Source: Klebsormidium nitens (taxonomy: Eukaryota > Plantae > Klebsormidiophyceae). From it: a DNA stretch of 64,000 nucleotides. Positions within the stretch are counted from its first letter, which is position 1. Every line of letters starts with the position of its first letter. The notes beneath the pieces were generated by a model. It did no database searches. It saw only the letters and a list, made by a program, of their open reading frames with translations, and had not been told where the DNA came from. The DNA lies in NCBI GenBank assembly GCA_000708835.1, contig DF237042.1:124001-188000 (forward strand). Reading direction: 5' to 3'. Below, piece after piece: positions 14,527-24,541 of this stretch. The position numbers and the translations under genes were made by a program.

Positions 14527-17500
14527 TCAGACTGCCACGTCCGCATGAAGCGCGGCCTCAGACTCGTCCTCCTCTTCCTCCGACGTCTCGCCGCCGCTGT
14601 CCGCAATCTCCTCCCCCACCTCGTGCTTCTTCAGCCTCTTGTTCAGAGAGTGGTCGAAGTGCCACGTGCTGCACATCGGAGAGCGACATAGGGTGATCAA
14701 CGGCTGTGATTTTACCCCGTCAATAGCTCCGTCAATAGGGCTGAGCGACGACAGCTTCTTTTTTCGCTCCTGGTTCTGGGCGTCGCCAATCTGCCACGTG
14801 TACTTGCAAGCAGGAAGGGCGAGGGGATATAAACGCTTCGGATTTGGACACTGGCAGTAGCTCGCAAAAGAAGCGAACGCAGCGCCAGCTTTGTTGTACA
14901 GTGGTGTCGAGGTGTTGAGTGTTGCATACAAGGGACGCAGAATGGTTTCTCTCCAAGTAACAAATTTGCGGGACAGCACTTGTTTCATGCGACGGACTCA
15001 CGGGCTGCTCCCATAAAACATCAGTCAAAGAAATGTTGACCTCTGAGCCGTCCCAACACGTTACTTGCGTACTCCTTTCAATGGTCGAAGGCTTGAGCTC
15101 TACGTTTTAGAAGAATTAGACCAAACATACGTTGCTGAAAATTCAGAGGTGCAAAGGGGTTTGGGCTTAAAGGAGTTTACCCGTGGCCCTTGCCGACGCG
15201 GCGCAGCTGGGTCACCATGCCGGCCAGCTTCTTGACGGTGATCACCTGCGAGCGCGCGCAGGAAAGTTGTTCAAAGCGCGCGCGGGTAGTGTGACGTGTA
15301 AAACCCGCGGCAACACCGGCAGCCGGCCGAGCGCTCACGTGGGCGGTTTCCGAAACAGTCCGAAAGTGCTTGTACTTGAAATGAAAGCCTCAGCGACGGG
15401 TGCAAGGAAATGGAGAAAGGGAACAGAAAGAGCACAAATGCTTCACCGCTCGGCAGGTCAGTCCCTTGCTAGATCGTGAATACGTGCTGCCAAGAGAAGT
15501 GGTTGCATCGAAATGAGGAAGAGCGCAGACTGGAGCAAAGTTTAGGAGTTCAGGCCCAGCACGGATACGTATGGTTGAGCAACCTATTCTTTATACATGT
15601 TATACCGAAAACAAACATTTTCCTCACAAAACAGCTAACAAGAATACGGAGCAACGGTACTCTAATGGGGGAGTGCAGACGTGTATCCACCGCGGAAAGT
15701 TGAGAGCAGGGGAGCTGGAAATGTTCCTCCAATCTTAGTTGCGTACTTCTGGGTTGAGCCGCAATTTGAAATAAAAGATGAAGGGATCTTCGCGTCGGGG
15801 TATTTCAAGAAACTTTGACTGTGGCTCCGAAGGGCAACCTGACAAGTCCTCTGAGAGGACACTTTCTTCCCAGAAAATATCGTTGCATCATGGCCACCTT
15901 TCAAAAGTGAACCAAAACAATCGGGGTTCACGAAGTGAGAAGCAGCAACGGGCACTTACACCCAAACAAACCGCCGTACAAGCTTGTCCAAAACAAATTT
16001 TGGAACATGGATCTCACTGAGAGCAGTGGTGGATCGTGTGACGCATCTTTTCACCAAGATAGACCGATTTGAAACATACCCTGTTGCAACAGCGAAGACG
16101 CGAAAGAACATTCAGAGCTGGGCGAAGATGAACAAAAATCATTATATGCGGAGAAACTTTGAAAAAGATCAAAGATGATTGAGAAGGGAGTTTAATGCCT
16201 CACCAGGGGATGGATGAAGCCGTCGGTGAGGTAATCGGAGAACTCGTCGTCGTTCTCTTCGGCTGCCAGCTGCGAGGCATTAAGACTCCCATCAGCTCTG
16301 GAACGAGAAGCTTTGTTGCGGCTCTCCAATAAGTCGAACTATCCCCCTGGGTTATTCTAGGAATTCCTACTCGCGTGAACCACTTGTAGCAAGCACATGA
16401 GCGGCGGATCGAAAGTGATACAATCAAAGCTCGAAAAGAAAGCTCGAAGTGAGCACTAAGCAGAAAGCTTTACCCAATCTACTGACGGACGCTCTACGCG
16501 CAGTACCACTTTGCAGATAAAGTTGTGAGAGAGCGACGTCGCTGCACTACTGTAGTTCTTGGGTCCTCTGACTGAGGGGGTTCTCTTCGGTAAATCATCC
16601 CTACGAATCGGCGAGGCTGCTGTTATGGAAGGAGATCTCTGCGACTCGGCAAGGCAACCGCGCGCTGCAACCAAGGGGGATAAGTTGCGCTTTACACGGA
16701 AACGATTTTGTTACATCTGAGCGCGTCATCCGTATCCTACCAACAGTAACGCAGCGCACTAGAAGCTGGTACGTGCCTGGTTAAGGTCGCGGAGCTTCTC
16801 GTTGTGGACCTTGAAGATTGCCAGAACGATCTCCATGGCTGCACAGGGGAAAAATAGAGATTTCGTTAGGATTCCGCCGACCAAATTGAAGACCAGAGCG
16901 AACGGAAGTGCCGTGTTGAACACATTTGTAAACACTCTGACAGGAAAGGGCTCTTTCGGGAACGGAGCCGAAGATAAGCTACCAAGGATTTAAAGGCAGG
17001 TTCACGGGTTTTGATCGGCCGCTTGCGTAAGCATGAATCTGCGTACAATTCCAGAAGTAGACAATACTGGTGTGTCTAGAGCAGTCGCTCACTTGCCAAC
17101 GCTCACAAGAAAAGCCACGAAGCGCAGCGGATTCCGCTTTCGAGCCCGGAACTTACTGTAGAGCGCCTCGCCCTTTTCTTCGTGGTCGAACTCAGACTCC
17201 GGCTGCCCGATCTGGTACAGCACCACCTTCCCGCCACGCAGGCCCTGCACGTCGTGCTCATTCACGTTTCTGAGATGATAAACTTACGAAGGTTGCAAGT
17301 AAAAATTTGAACGGAGCTCGTTTCTAACGGAGTACCACATTGTGAATTGCTCAATTTCCGACAAAGTGTGAGGACGCAAGTGGTTGACTGGACAGGAATC
17401 ACCTAATTGCATTCAGGAAGTCGGAAAGGGATCCAAAACGCGAGAATATTGACACGGCCCAAAGTCTTGGATGGGCCGAATTGGACTTGAATGGGCGGTT

Positions 17501-23400: not shown

Positions 23401-24541
23401 CGCCCCCGACCTCACCGTTTTCATGTTAGTCCGCGACCTCAGATTTCGGTGCGATATTGGGAAAGAGCTCAGATTTTGGTGCAATATTGGGAAAGAGCTT
23501 TGAAAGCTGGTGCAAGGGGGTAATTTATAAACCGTTCTTCAGACACAGCCGAAAATTTGAAGAAGGTCATCTGGTGTGAATCAGCTTCAATGAGGAGAAG
23601 GGTGTTTCGATGTGCAGCTAGCAGACGAGGAAGGGGATCAGGAGTTCTCGGACTTCATCACCGACAGTTTTCTCAGCCACCTGGTACGTTCCACCTCTCC
23701 TCACGAATCTCTTTCTCTCCCGTGCAATCTTCGCTTATGCGATTCGAGGACGAGGTTCGAAGTTACTAGTATCGTTGCGTGGCTGAGGGCTCTCCGTGAG
23801 ATCCTTGAGGGCTCCCCTTTTCTGCCTTTGTCTCGTGTGCGGTACACTTCCCCTCCGACTCTGACGATTTAGGATGTCGAAGTGCTCTCGTAGTCAAAGC
23901 CGTGGCAAGTTGTCGATGAGACGAAGCGCTATTCCCTTCTCAGCGTGCGCCACGTGTCGATGTGCAGACCGTCCTCGTGAAGAAGACCGCCGGCTACGTG
24001 GCGCAGCTGCGCCGCGTCGGCAAGGGGCACGGGTAAGAGCGTTACTAAAAACCCGCTCATGGAGTCTCGTAGGCTTTGACTGGAACGCGGCCTCGCTCCT
24101 AGCTGCGCAGTAACATTACTTGAACCGAGAAGCCACGACATAGGTCATTGCGGATGCTCTCTTTTTAAGAGATGGATGGCCTTTTCAATGGGCCTTCCCC
24201 ACCTCTACTTTCTGGCTCCGCCAAGTTGACCATAAGGCCCTTGAAGACCAGGGCTTCTGGTAAGAGGTCGAAGATTAGGAGAAATTAGCCTTTGTCGTGA
24301 ACCTTATTCCGTCCTTGTTCGTGGCCGACGTAGAGGCCGCAAGAAAAGGAAGCGGGGATGCCCCCCCGCTCAAGAACAGAACAGGGCGGTTACGTCTACC
24401 AGGCAGTGACCGGGCTAACTAACGCACCCCGCTTGCCGCAGCACGTGGCACTTCGACCACTACCTGCACAAGAAGCTGGAAGGGGACCACGTGGGGGACG
24501 AGTTACGTACCGGGCTGCACGAACTTGAAGGGACGAAGTAG
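20415..24541 (+). CDS. Ferritin-like protein B (322 aa): ~100-aa organelle-targeting-like leader, degenerate ferroxidase centre
   Basis: Exons 20415-20726, 21588-21718, 22065-22209, 22681-22768, 23174-23235, 23618-23683, 23968-24032, 24442-24541 (969 nt). The six internal exons are the same lengths as in A (131, 145, 88, 62, 66, 65). Motifs: RDYVSLRGLARW, DFDHDQKGDALYTMELVLA, YVAQLRRVGKGHGTWHFD. The leader MAAPASLMRIVFPLLSRNSSNFLRS.. is Ser/Leu/Arg-rich. Confidence 0.92.
23441..23500. repeat. Two-copy 29-bp tandem repeat in a ferritin B intron
   Basis: agatttcggtgcgatattgggaaagagctc followed by agattttggtgcaatattgggaaagagctt. Confidence 0.85.

Follow-up and report, generated by a model that had tools for sequence, protein, structure and literature searches.

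To our knowledge, the ferritins of plants and green algae have been treated as uniformly catalytic, organelle-targeted proteins of the H type. The vertebrate L chain shows that duplication of a catalytic subunit can give rise to a non-catalytic shell subunit; it keeps D131 and E134 of the three-fold channel together with the cavity Glu cluster, and has a K62-E107 salt bridge. A transition from ferritin to chaperone is known to us only from Artemia. Here we describe two ferritin-fold genes, A (KnA) and B (KnB), which lie head to head at positions 14527 to 24541 of a window of 64,000 nucleotides from the land-dwelling streptophyte alga Klebsormidium nitens (assembly GCA_000708835.1, contig DF237042.1). 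Coordinates are those of the window unless stated otherwise, and the record coordinate is the window coordinate + 124000. Both genes are intact and both have lost the ferroxidase centre. They very probably represent a real, selected subfamily of ferroxidase-dead ferritins.

Artemin, one of the closest known proteins for comparison, is a ferritin-derived, cytosolic chaperone of Artemia diapause (PMC9742257). It keeps one of the seven ferroxidase residues and no nucleation Glu, and its three-fold channel is uncharged; its helix E is longer, its C-terminus lies within the shell cavity, and its 10 cysteines have been proposed to act as a redox switch (PMC9742257). The products of A and B are like artemin in having lost ferroxidase, three-fold-channel and nucleation residues and in carrying a C-terminal extension, whose position in the cavity is read from topology only. 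They differ in their independent origin (green against arthropod lineage) and in the tail itself, which is a defined loop L' plus helix F in artemin but acidic and predicted to be disordered in gene A.

Gene models and the altered metal sites

Ferritin-like exon pieces were located by six-frame translation, on the minus strand from 14527 to about 19300 and on the plus strand from about 20400 to 24541, and the splice sites of both genes were set by the GT-AG rule. Positions 14527 and 24541 are the stop codons of two divergently transcribed genes:

14527-19336, minus strand: gene A (KnA, GAQ81881.1), start to stop codon, eight coding exons, 242 amino acids, GT/GC-AG boundaries
19336-19307, 18836-18706, 18118-17974, 17244-17157, 16838-16777, 16269-16204, 15245-15181 and 14668-14527, minus strand: coding exons of gene A
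20415-24541, plus strand: gene B (KnB), start to stop codon, eight coding exons, 322 amino acids, GT-AG boundaries
20415-20726, 21588-21718, 22065-22209, 22681-22768, 23174-23235, 23618-23683, 23968-24032 and 24442-24541, plus strand: coding exons of gene B

The translation of gene A is letter for letter that of database protein P0001 (GAQ81881.1, 'Ferritin [Klebsormidium nitens]'), and GenBank record DF237042.1 annotates a 322-amino-acid PF00210 product at the site of gene B, matching the length of our model. The six internal exons are equal in length between the two genes (131, 145, 88, 62, 66 and 65 nt), and the proteins are 58% identical over 227 aligned residues, rising to 72% in exon 3. 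The pair goes back to an old tandem-inverted duplication of a plant-type ferritin gene.

The fold is that of ferritin by several measures, at a level that chance could not explain. P0001 scores 56.7 bits against the Pfam Ferritin profile (PF00210; cut-off 24.5) over profile positions 2-142, while Pfam searches with single exons, which are too short, gave only a weak Ferritin match for exon 3 alone (E = 0.048). Aligned end to end with plant ferritins in the Protein Data Bank (PDB; 7xz4, 6j4j and 3a68), exon 3 of gene A reads DRERTC at the EEREH motif. An AlphaFold2 (AF2) model of the gene A product, built from a 40-sequence alignment, has a predicted local distance difference test score (pLDDT) of 86 and shows the four long helices A-D at residues 43-70, 78-104, 127-156 and 160-191, then helix E at 195-219. 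Its top Foldseek matches are plant ferritins, the best being soybean H-2 ferritin with a template-modelling (TM) score of 0.95 (normalised by target) and a root-mean-square deviation (rmsd) of 1.2 A over 173 columns. Soybean SFER4 (3a68), soybean H-2 (6j4j), Ulva pertusa ferritin (3vnx) and GAQ85854.1 are 40-48% identical to A and B. The plant and green-algal proteins share with A and B the N-terminal extension region, the BC loop, the RRVGKGHG.WHFD four-fold segment and a multi-intron gene whose intron positions are partly the same. The core of both proteins aligns without gaps to these ferritins, the N-terminal extension-peptide region included, and the four-fold segment RRVGKGHGTWHFD is identical in A and B.

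The metal sites are another matter. All retrieved ferritins were aligned with MAFFT, and the residue columns were identified from the canonical K. nitens protein in H-chain numbering:

Gene A at E27, Y34, E61, E62, E64, H65, E107, D131, E134, E140 and Q141: S, L, R, E, T, C, F, D, T, P, L
Gene B at the same 11 positions: S, L, R, E, A, D, Y, D, T, H, L

Of the seven ferroxidase-centre residues only E62 is left in either protein, and a di-iron centre was found in neither. D131 of the three-fold channel is kept in both and E134 is replaced by T. The cavity-facing carboxylates E61, E64, E67 and E140 are also replaced in both, E67 by M in A and by L in B. Positions 57, 60, 61 and 64 read D, D, R, T in A and D, N, R, A in B, a combination without the nucleation and channel residues of an L chain. 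A and B thus differ from plant and green-algal ferritins at six of seven ferroxidase residues and at E134, E64, E67 and E140, and also in the apparent lack of a transit peptide in A and in the extension of helix E with the tail behind it.

These readings agree throughout with a first-pass annotation made from the letters of the window. It had described intact head-to-head genes with identical internal exon lengths, a gap-free ferritin alignment and a conserved four-fold segment. It had also read S/S at E27, L/L at Y34, R/R at E61, E62 kept, C/D at H65, F/Y at E107 and L/L at Q141 (A/B), all of which return in the PDB alignment and the column tables; its T/T at E134 and T/A at E64 recur in the column tables.

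The two proteins part at their ends. Gene A begins MAKEGASGDK, ten codons ahead of exon 2, and an in-frame stop lies upstream in K. nitens as well as in its orthologue from a related assembly, L004; because of this arrangement we consider it to lack a transit peptide. Gene B has a presequence of 104 amino acids that is basic and Ser-rich (pI 10.2), with its first acidic residue at position 39. We infer that the product of A is cytosolic and that the presequence of B is organellar, directing it to the plastid or the mitochondrion. Past WHFD, a conserved amphipathic continuation of helix E is common to both, and the C-terminal extension amounts to 37 amino acids in A and about 22 in B, where the tail is nearly neutral. 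In the AF2 model helix E of gene A (195-219) is roughly double its normal length and leads into the low-confidence tail. This acidic tail, with 13 D/E in 37 residues, is kept in L004A and in L002A, the orthologue from a second assembly. Histidines stand at residues 199, 202 and 211 of A. Cysteines number two in A and three in B, one of the latter in the presequence.

14527-14640, minus strand: codons of the gene A C-terminal extension, residues about 206-242, comprising the continuation of helix E and the acidic tail

Selection and transcription

The orthologues come from two related Klebsormidium assemblies, a Logan contig of SRR23617307 (L004) and Joint Genome Institute (JGI) metagenome 3300060284 (L002). 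In L004 the two genes again lie head to head, and every exon length and splice site is conserved; L002 has a more distant A orthologue beside the same mechanosensitive (MS) channel neighbour. Nonsynonymous (dN) and synonymous (dS) divergence, by the Nei-Gojobori method (NG86) or maximum likelihood (ML) where stated, was as follows:

KnA against L004A: dN 0.014, dS 0.26, dN/dS 0.055
KnB against L004B: dN 0.052, dS 0.40, dN/dS 0.13
KnA against L002A: dN/dS 0.29 (NG86), about 0.07 (ML)
A against B: dS saturated under ML; dN/dS 0.42 (NG86)

Both A and B are under purifying selection. The replacements S27, L34, R61, T134 and L141 are identical across A, B and their orthologues. Since the replacement residues themselves are conserved, the loss of the ferroxidase centre is a new constrained state and not decay.

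Transcription was followed in public sequencing runs, 16 of which contain part of the stretch. Four of them (X1-X4; the kind of run is not on record) were compared over positions 16150-22149. The contigs of these runs match the window at 100% identity and leave out the introns exactly, and are therefore RNA-derived. All seven junctions within this interval, five of gene A and two of gene B, are present in spliced contigs. The five gene A junctions occur in three or four of the runs each, and the first two junctions of gene B in two. The parts of the locus that bear on transcription are these:

16270-16776, minus strand: gene A intron 5, GC-AG; joint 16269/16777, ends CT..GC on the plus strand, in all four runs
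18119-18705, minus strand: gene A intron 2, also seen in a retained-intron contig, 18089-18735
19337-19831, minus strand: 5' leader of gene A within exon 1, at least 495 nt; unbroken contigs 19304-19819/19831
19832-20216, no strand: divergent promoter region between the outermost contig ends of A (19831) and B (20217), at most 385 bp

The donor of gene A intron 5 is CAG|gcacgt in K. nitens and gtacgt in L004; as the orthologue has a normal GT donor, the change from GT to GC is recent and tolerated. The contig retaining intron 2 has a depth of 131 and 121 in runs X1 and X2, against 320 and 290 for the spliced form (about 40%), and low-depth intronic contigs were found beside it. The retained intron may represent unprocessed RNA or regulated intron retention.

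That A and B might be decaying or neutral duplicates, with frames open by chance, is an idea to which the wholesale loss of catalytic residues, the GC donor and the retained-intron contig of gene A lend some colour. It is nevertheless highly improbable, and the data on selection and expression already refute it. Between orthologues, dN/dS is 0.055 and 0.13 at a dS of 0.26-0.40, frames and exon lengths are intact across three assemblies, the replacement residues have been conserved, there are abundant spliced contigs with the GC intron removed correctly, and the clade to which the genes belong is common to Klebsormidium and Chara. The first-pass annotation had foreseen that missing transcripts or a dN/dS near 1 would count against its own reading; spliced contigs were found for both genes, together with the ratios just given. 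Its proposal of a long-maintained, selected, non-catalytic subfamily is supported by those ratios, by the spliced transcripts and by the clade formed with Chara proteins and a third K. nitens gene, KnC.

The outermost contig ends of A and B are so close, at most 385 bp, that a shared divergent promoter is indicated; the figure is an upper bound, as true transcription start sites cannot be fixed from contigs. Runs X1 and X2, labelled 'organism A', have gene A contigs at a depth of about 300 and none of B. In X3 and X4, labelled 'organism B', gene B stands at about 33 and gene A at 2-11. Because the depth of contigs reflects expression poorly, presence or absence alone was used. The two genes thus appear in opposite run sets despite their common divergent promoter (A only in X1 and X2, mainly B in X3 and X4).

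The leader of gene A contains nine upstream ATGs, with an in-frame stop before the start codon. The corresponding leader in L004 (8348-8867 of that contig) has 11 upstream ATGs, none of them kept as a peptide in comparison with K. nitens, which suggests translational control by the leader itself and not by a conserved peptide from an upstream open reading frame (ORF). A transit-like upstream ORF starting at 19541 was considered as an alternative N-terminus of gene A and rejected: it runs in a different frame and stops after two codons of exon 2, L004 does not conserve its ATG, and a single exon 1-2 junction is seen across all contigs.

A ferritin clade of Klebsormidium and Chara

Homologues were collected by an exhaustive profile search with exon 3 against representatives and by three word-based searches; the latter missed gene B and, with the profile of A and Chara, KnC, so that a blank in them is not absence. 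A canonical ferritin, which the first-pass annotation had proposed to look for elsewhere in the genome, is present as P0129 (GAQ85854.1, scaffold DF237207.1), with all ligands, an intact centre and a presequence. The exhaustive search also gave KnC (P0016, GAQ81875.1), a third altered ferritin with a presequence of 89 amino acids. It lies on the same scaffold as A and B, at window coordinates -14114 to -10309 (L006 10001-13806), about 25 kb from gene A, with the unrelated genes CLAMP, a hydrolase, COQ9 and the MS channel in between. KnC and the A/B pair form a loose cluster.

Further members are GBG66951.1 and GBG73203.1 of Chara braunii and the environmental proteins P0234, which is 79% identical to KnC, and P0236, from a transcript contig of ERR12684110. 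The intron-less contig of that run (L005, 322-1065) encodes a C-type member 55% identical to KnC, which would widen the range of the clade.

KnC and the Chara proteins at the same 11 positions, E27 to Q141: A, F, Y/A/E, E,., D, E,., K/C, P, Q

KnC, both Chara proteins, P0234 and P0236 are like A and B in the change of E27 to A or S, of Y34 to F or L and of H65 to D, C or E, and in the loss of E134. They differ in keeping E107 and Q141 and mostly acidic residues at 61 and 64, and they have neither the E-helix extension nor the acidic tail; they are less degenerate than A and B. N139-E140 has become H-P, forming an LHP motif, in all clade members but B, which has S-H.

IQ-TREE under a site-heterogeneous model gave (KnC,((A,B),(Chara,Chara))) with support of 100/99. 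When the orthologues were added and 13 diagnostic columns dropped, a ten-member clade was recovered at 99/98, with the C-type proteins sister to Chara plus A/B. Long-branch attraction or active-site convergence as the cause of the clade was rejected: the group survives the removal of the 13 columns under a site-heterogeneous model, and the LHP motif is shared. L002A branches with A to the exclusion of B; the duplication that gave A and B is therefore older than the split between K. nitens and the L002 species. The branches of the clade are long; in the tree it has no settled place among green ferritins and is not related to animal L chains. Compared over internal exons, exon lengths run 84-61-88-128-64 in the canonical gene, 197-211-66 in KnC and 131-145-88-62-66-65 in A and B, a mosaic of shared intron positions that fits vertical descent from one multi-intron ancestor. 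A, B, KnC and the Chara proteins form one streptophyte-algal clade that coexists with one canonical plastid ferritin.

Altered ferroxidase ligands were also seen in P0154 (Sphagnum spp., a 38-member cluster), P0204 (Papaver), P0084 (Artemisia), P0089 (Chlorokybus), P0203 (Chlorella sorokiniana) and P0112 ([Myrmecia] bisecta); the Sphagnum ferritins carry E62K and H65R in five species. These losses look independent of the one described here, because their proteins fall outside the Klebsormidium/Chara clade. The exon-3 profile in addition hit P0004, a protein of 542 amino acids with about ten identical 52-residue repeats, at 71.9 bits in 10 stretches; this match almost certainly stems from the repeats and has nothing to do with ferritin.

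Possible roles of the altered shells

The segments that make subunit contacts, namely the BC loop, KGDALY.MEL and the four-fold segment, are conserved relative to canonical ferritin, and for this reason A and B most likely still build shells of the ferritin type. Such shells would no longer oxidise or mineralise iron and would serve an iron-independent role. By ferritin topology, the extended E helix and acidic tail of gene A would point into the lumen, while gene B would do the same or a related job in the plastid or the mitochondrion. We regard the chances that the function of this subfamily is iron-independent as about even. A protective chaperone specifically like artemin is a tentative suggestion, made by analogy. 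In its full form it would mean that streptophyte algae evolved an artemin-like protein independently of crustaceans, with iron chemistry gone and the lumen filled by E helices and acidic tails, as a cytosolic (A) and organellar (B) stress protectant in a desiccation-tolerant alga; so complete a picture is rather unlikely to hold in every part.

Several observations weigh against an iron-independent, artemin-like role. The direction of the tail is taken from topology alone, and the tail is modelled with low confidence. Neither protein is Cys-rich, with two or three cysteines against the 10 behind the proposed redox switch of artemin. The targeting of A and B was judged by eye and from composition. 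D131 and E62 are kept and B has D65, residues by which some metal binding is possible, and the acidic tail of gene A could serve as a nucleation site for mineral in its own right. E62, D/E65, E107 and Q141 are all present in KnC and the Chara proteins, which may thus retain a metal site; in that case the clade may not share one function.

A second possibility is that B, KnC and possibly A are partners in the manner of the L chain, co-assembling with canonical ferritin into heteropolymers and adjusting how stable the shell is, how iron enters or leaves it, or how the core forms. The regions of subunit contact are highly conserved relative to canonical ferritin, one canonical gene coexists, and B and KnC carry presequences as the canonical subunit does. 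In contrast, A appears to have none and should not meet a plastid subunit, which makes hetero-assembly less likely for it, and expression of A and of B was seen in different sets of runs. The three-fold channel and the nucleation carboxylates are retained in L chains, whereas E134, E61, E64, E67 and E140 are all replaced here; this loss of inner nucleation carboxylates and of the entry-channel Glu makes an L-chain-like role less likely for both A and B. They also differ from the vertebrate L chain in E62, F/Y107, R61 and T/A64, and the clade is unrelated to animal L chains. Overall we consider this proposal unlikely, with a partner role possible for B and KnC and unlikely for A.

A metal buffer with a relocated site is more doubtful still. 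Cations, whether non-enzymatically oxidised iron or another metal, would bind to 24 acidic tails and His-rich E helices and not to helix B. The tail of A, with its 13 D/E in 37 residues and the His at 199, 202 and 211, is kept throughout the A lineage and would suit such a role, as would the retained D131 of the three-fold channel. However, B has a shorter, nearly neutral tail, nothing of the kind is present in KnC and the Chara proteins, and the normal route of entry and oxidation has been removed with E134 and the ferroxidase centre.

Because ferroxidase, entry-channel and nucleation carboxylates have all been lost, we favour an iron-independent, artemin-like role over an L-chain-like one. 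Our ranking accordingly places the former first, the L-chain-like partner second and the relocated metal-binding tail third.

Searches of the literature on Klebsormidium ferritin, streptophyte ferroxidase, plant ferritin without a ferroxidase centre and the accessions, with subscription journals outside their scope, gave no description of the clade. Nor were characterised orthologues found, a case for which the first-pass annotation had allowed; the proteins are only auto-annotated as 'Ferritin'. What appears to be new is a non-catalytic branch of ferritins in the green lineage that includes an apparently cytosolic protein. The locus represents a conserved branch of this kind, which accompanies a normal ferritin in two or more classes of streptophyte algae and has one member that appears to lack a targeting peptide. 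Together with the scattered and apparently independent losses of the site in Sphagnum, Chlorokybus, Chlorella and some angiosperms, it means that the H-type-only rule for the green lineage needs revisiting.

The locus is a natural experiment in the use of a ferritin shell once its iron chemistry has been removed, and it supplies nanocage work with a plant ferritin cage that is naturally inert and ready-made. The transition from ferritin to chaperone may also have occurred here a second time, independently. If the artemin-like reading is true, the product of gene A would be the first cytosolic ferritin-fold cage of the green lineage, in an alga close to the origin of land plants.

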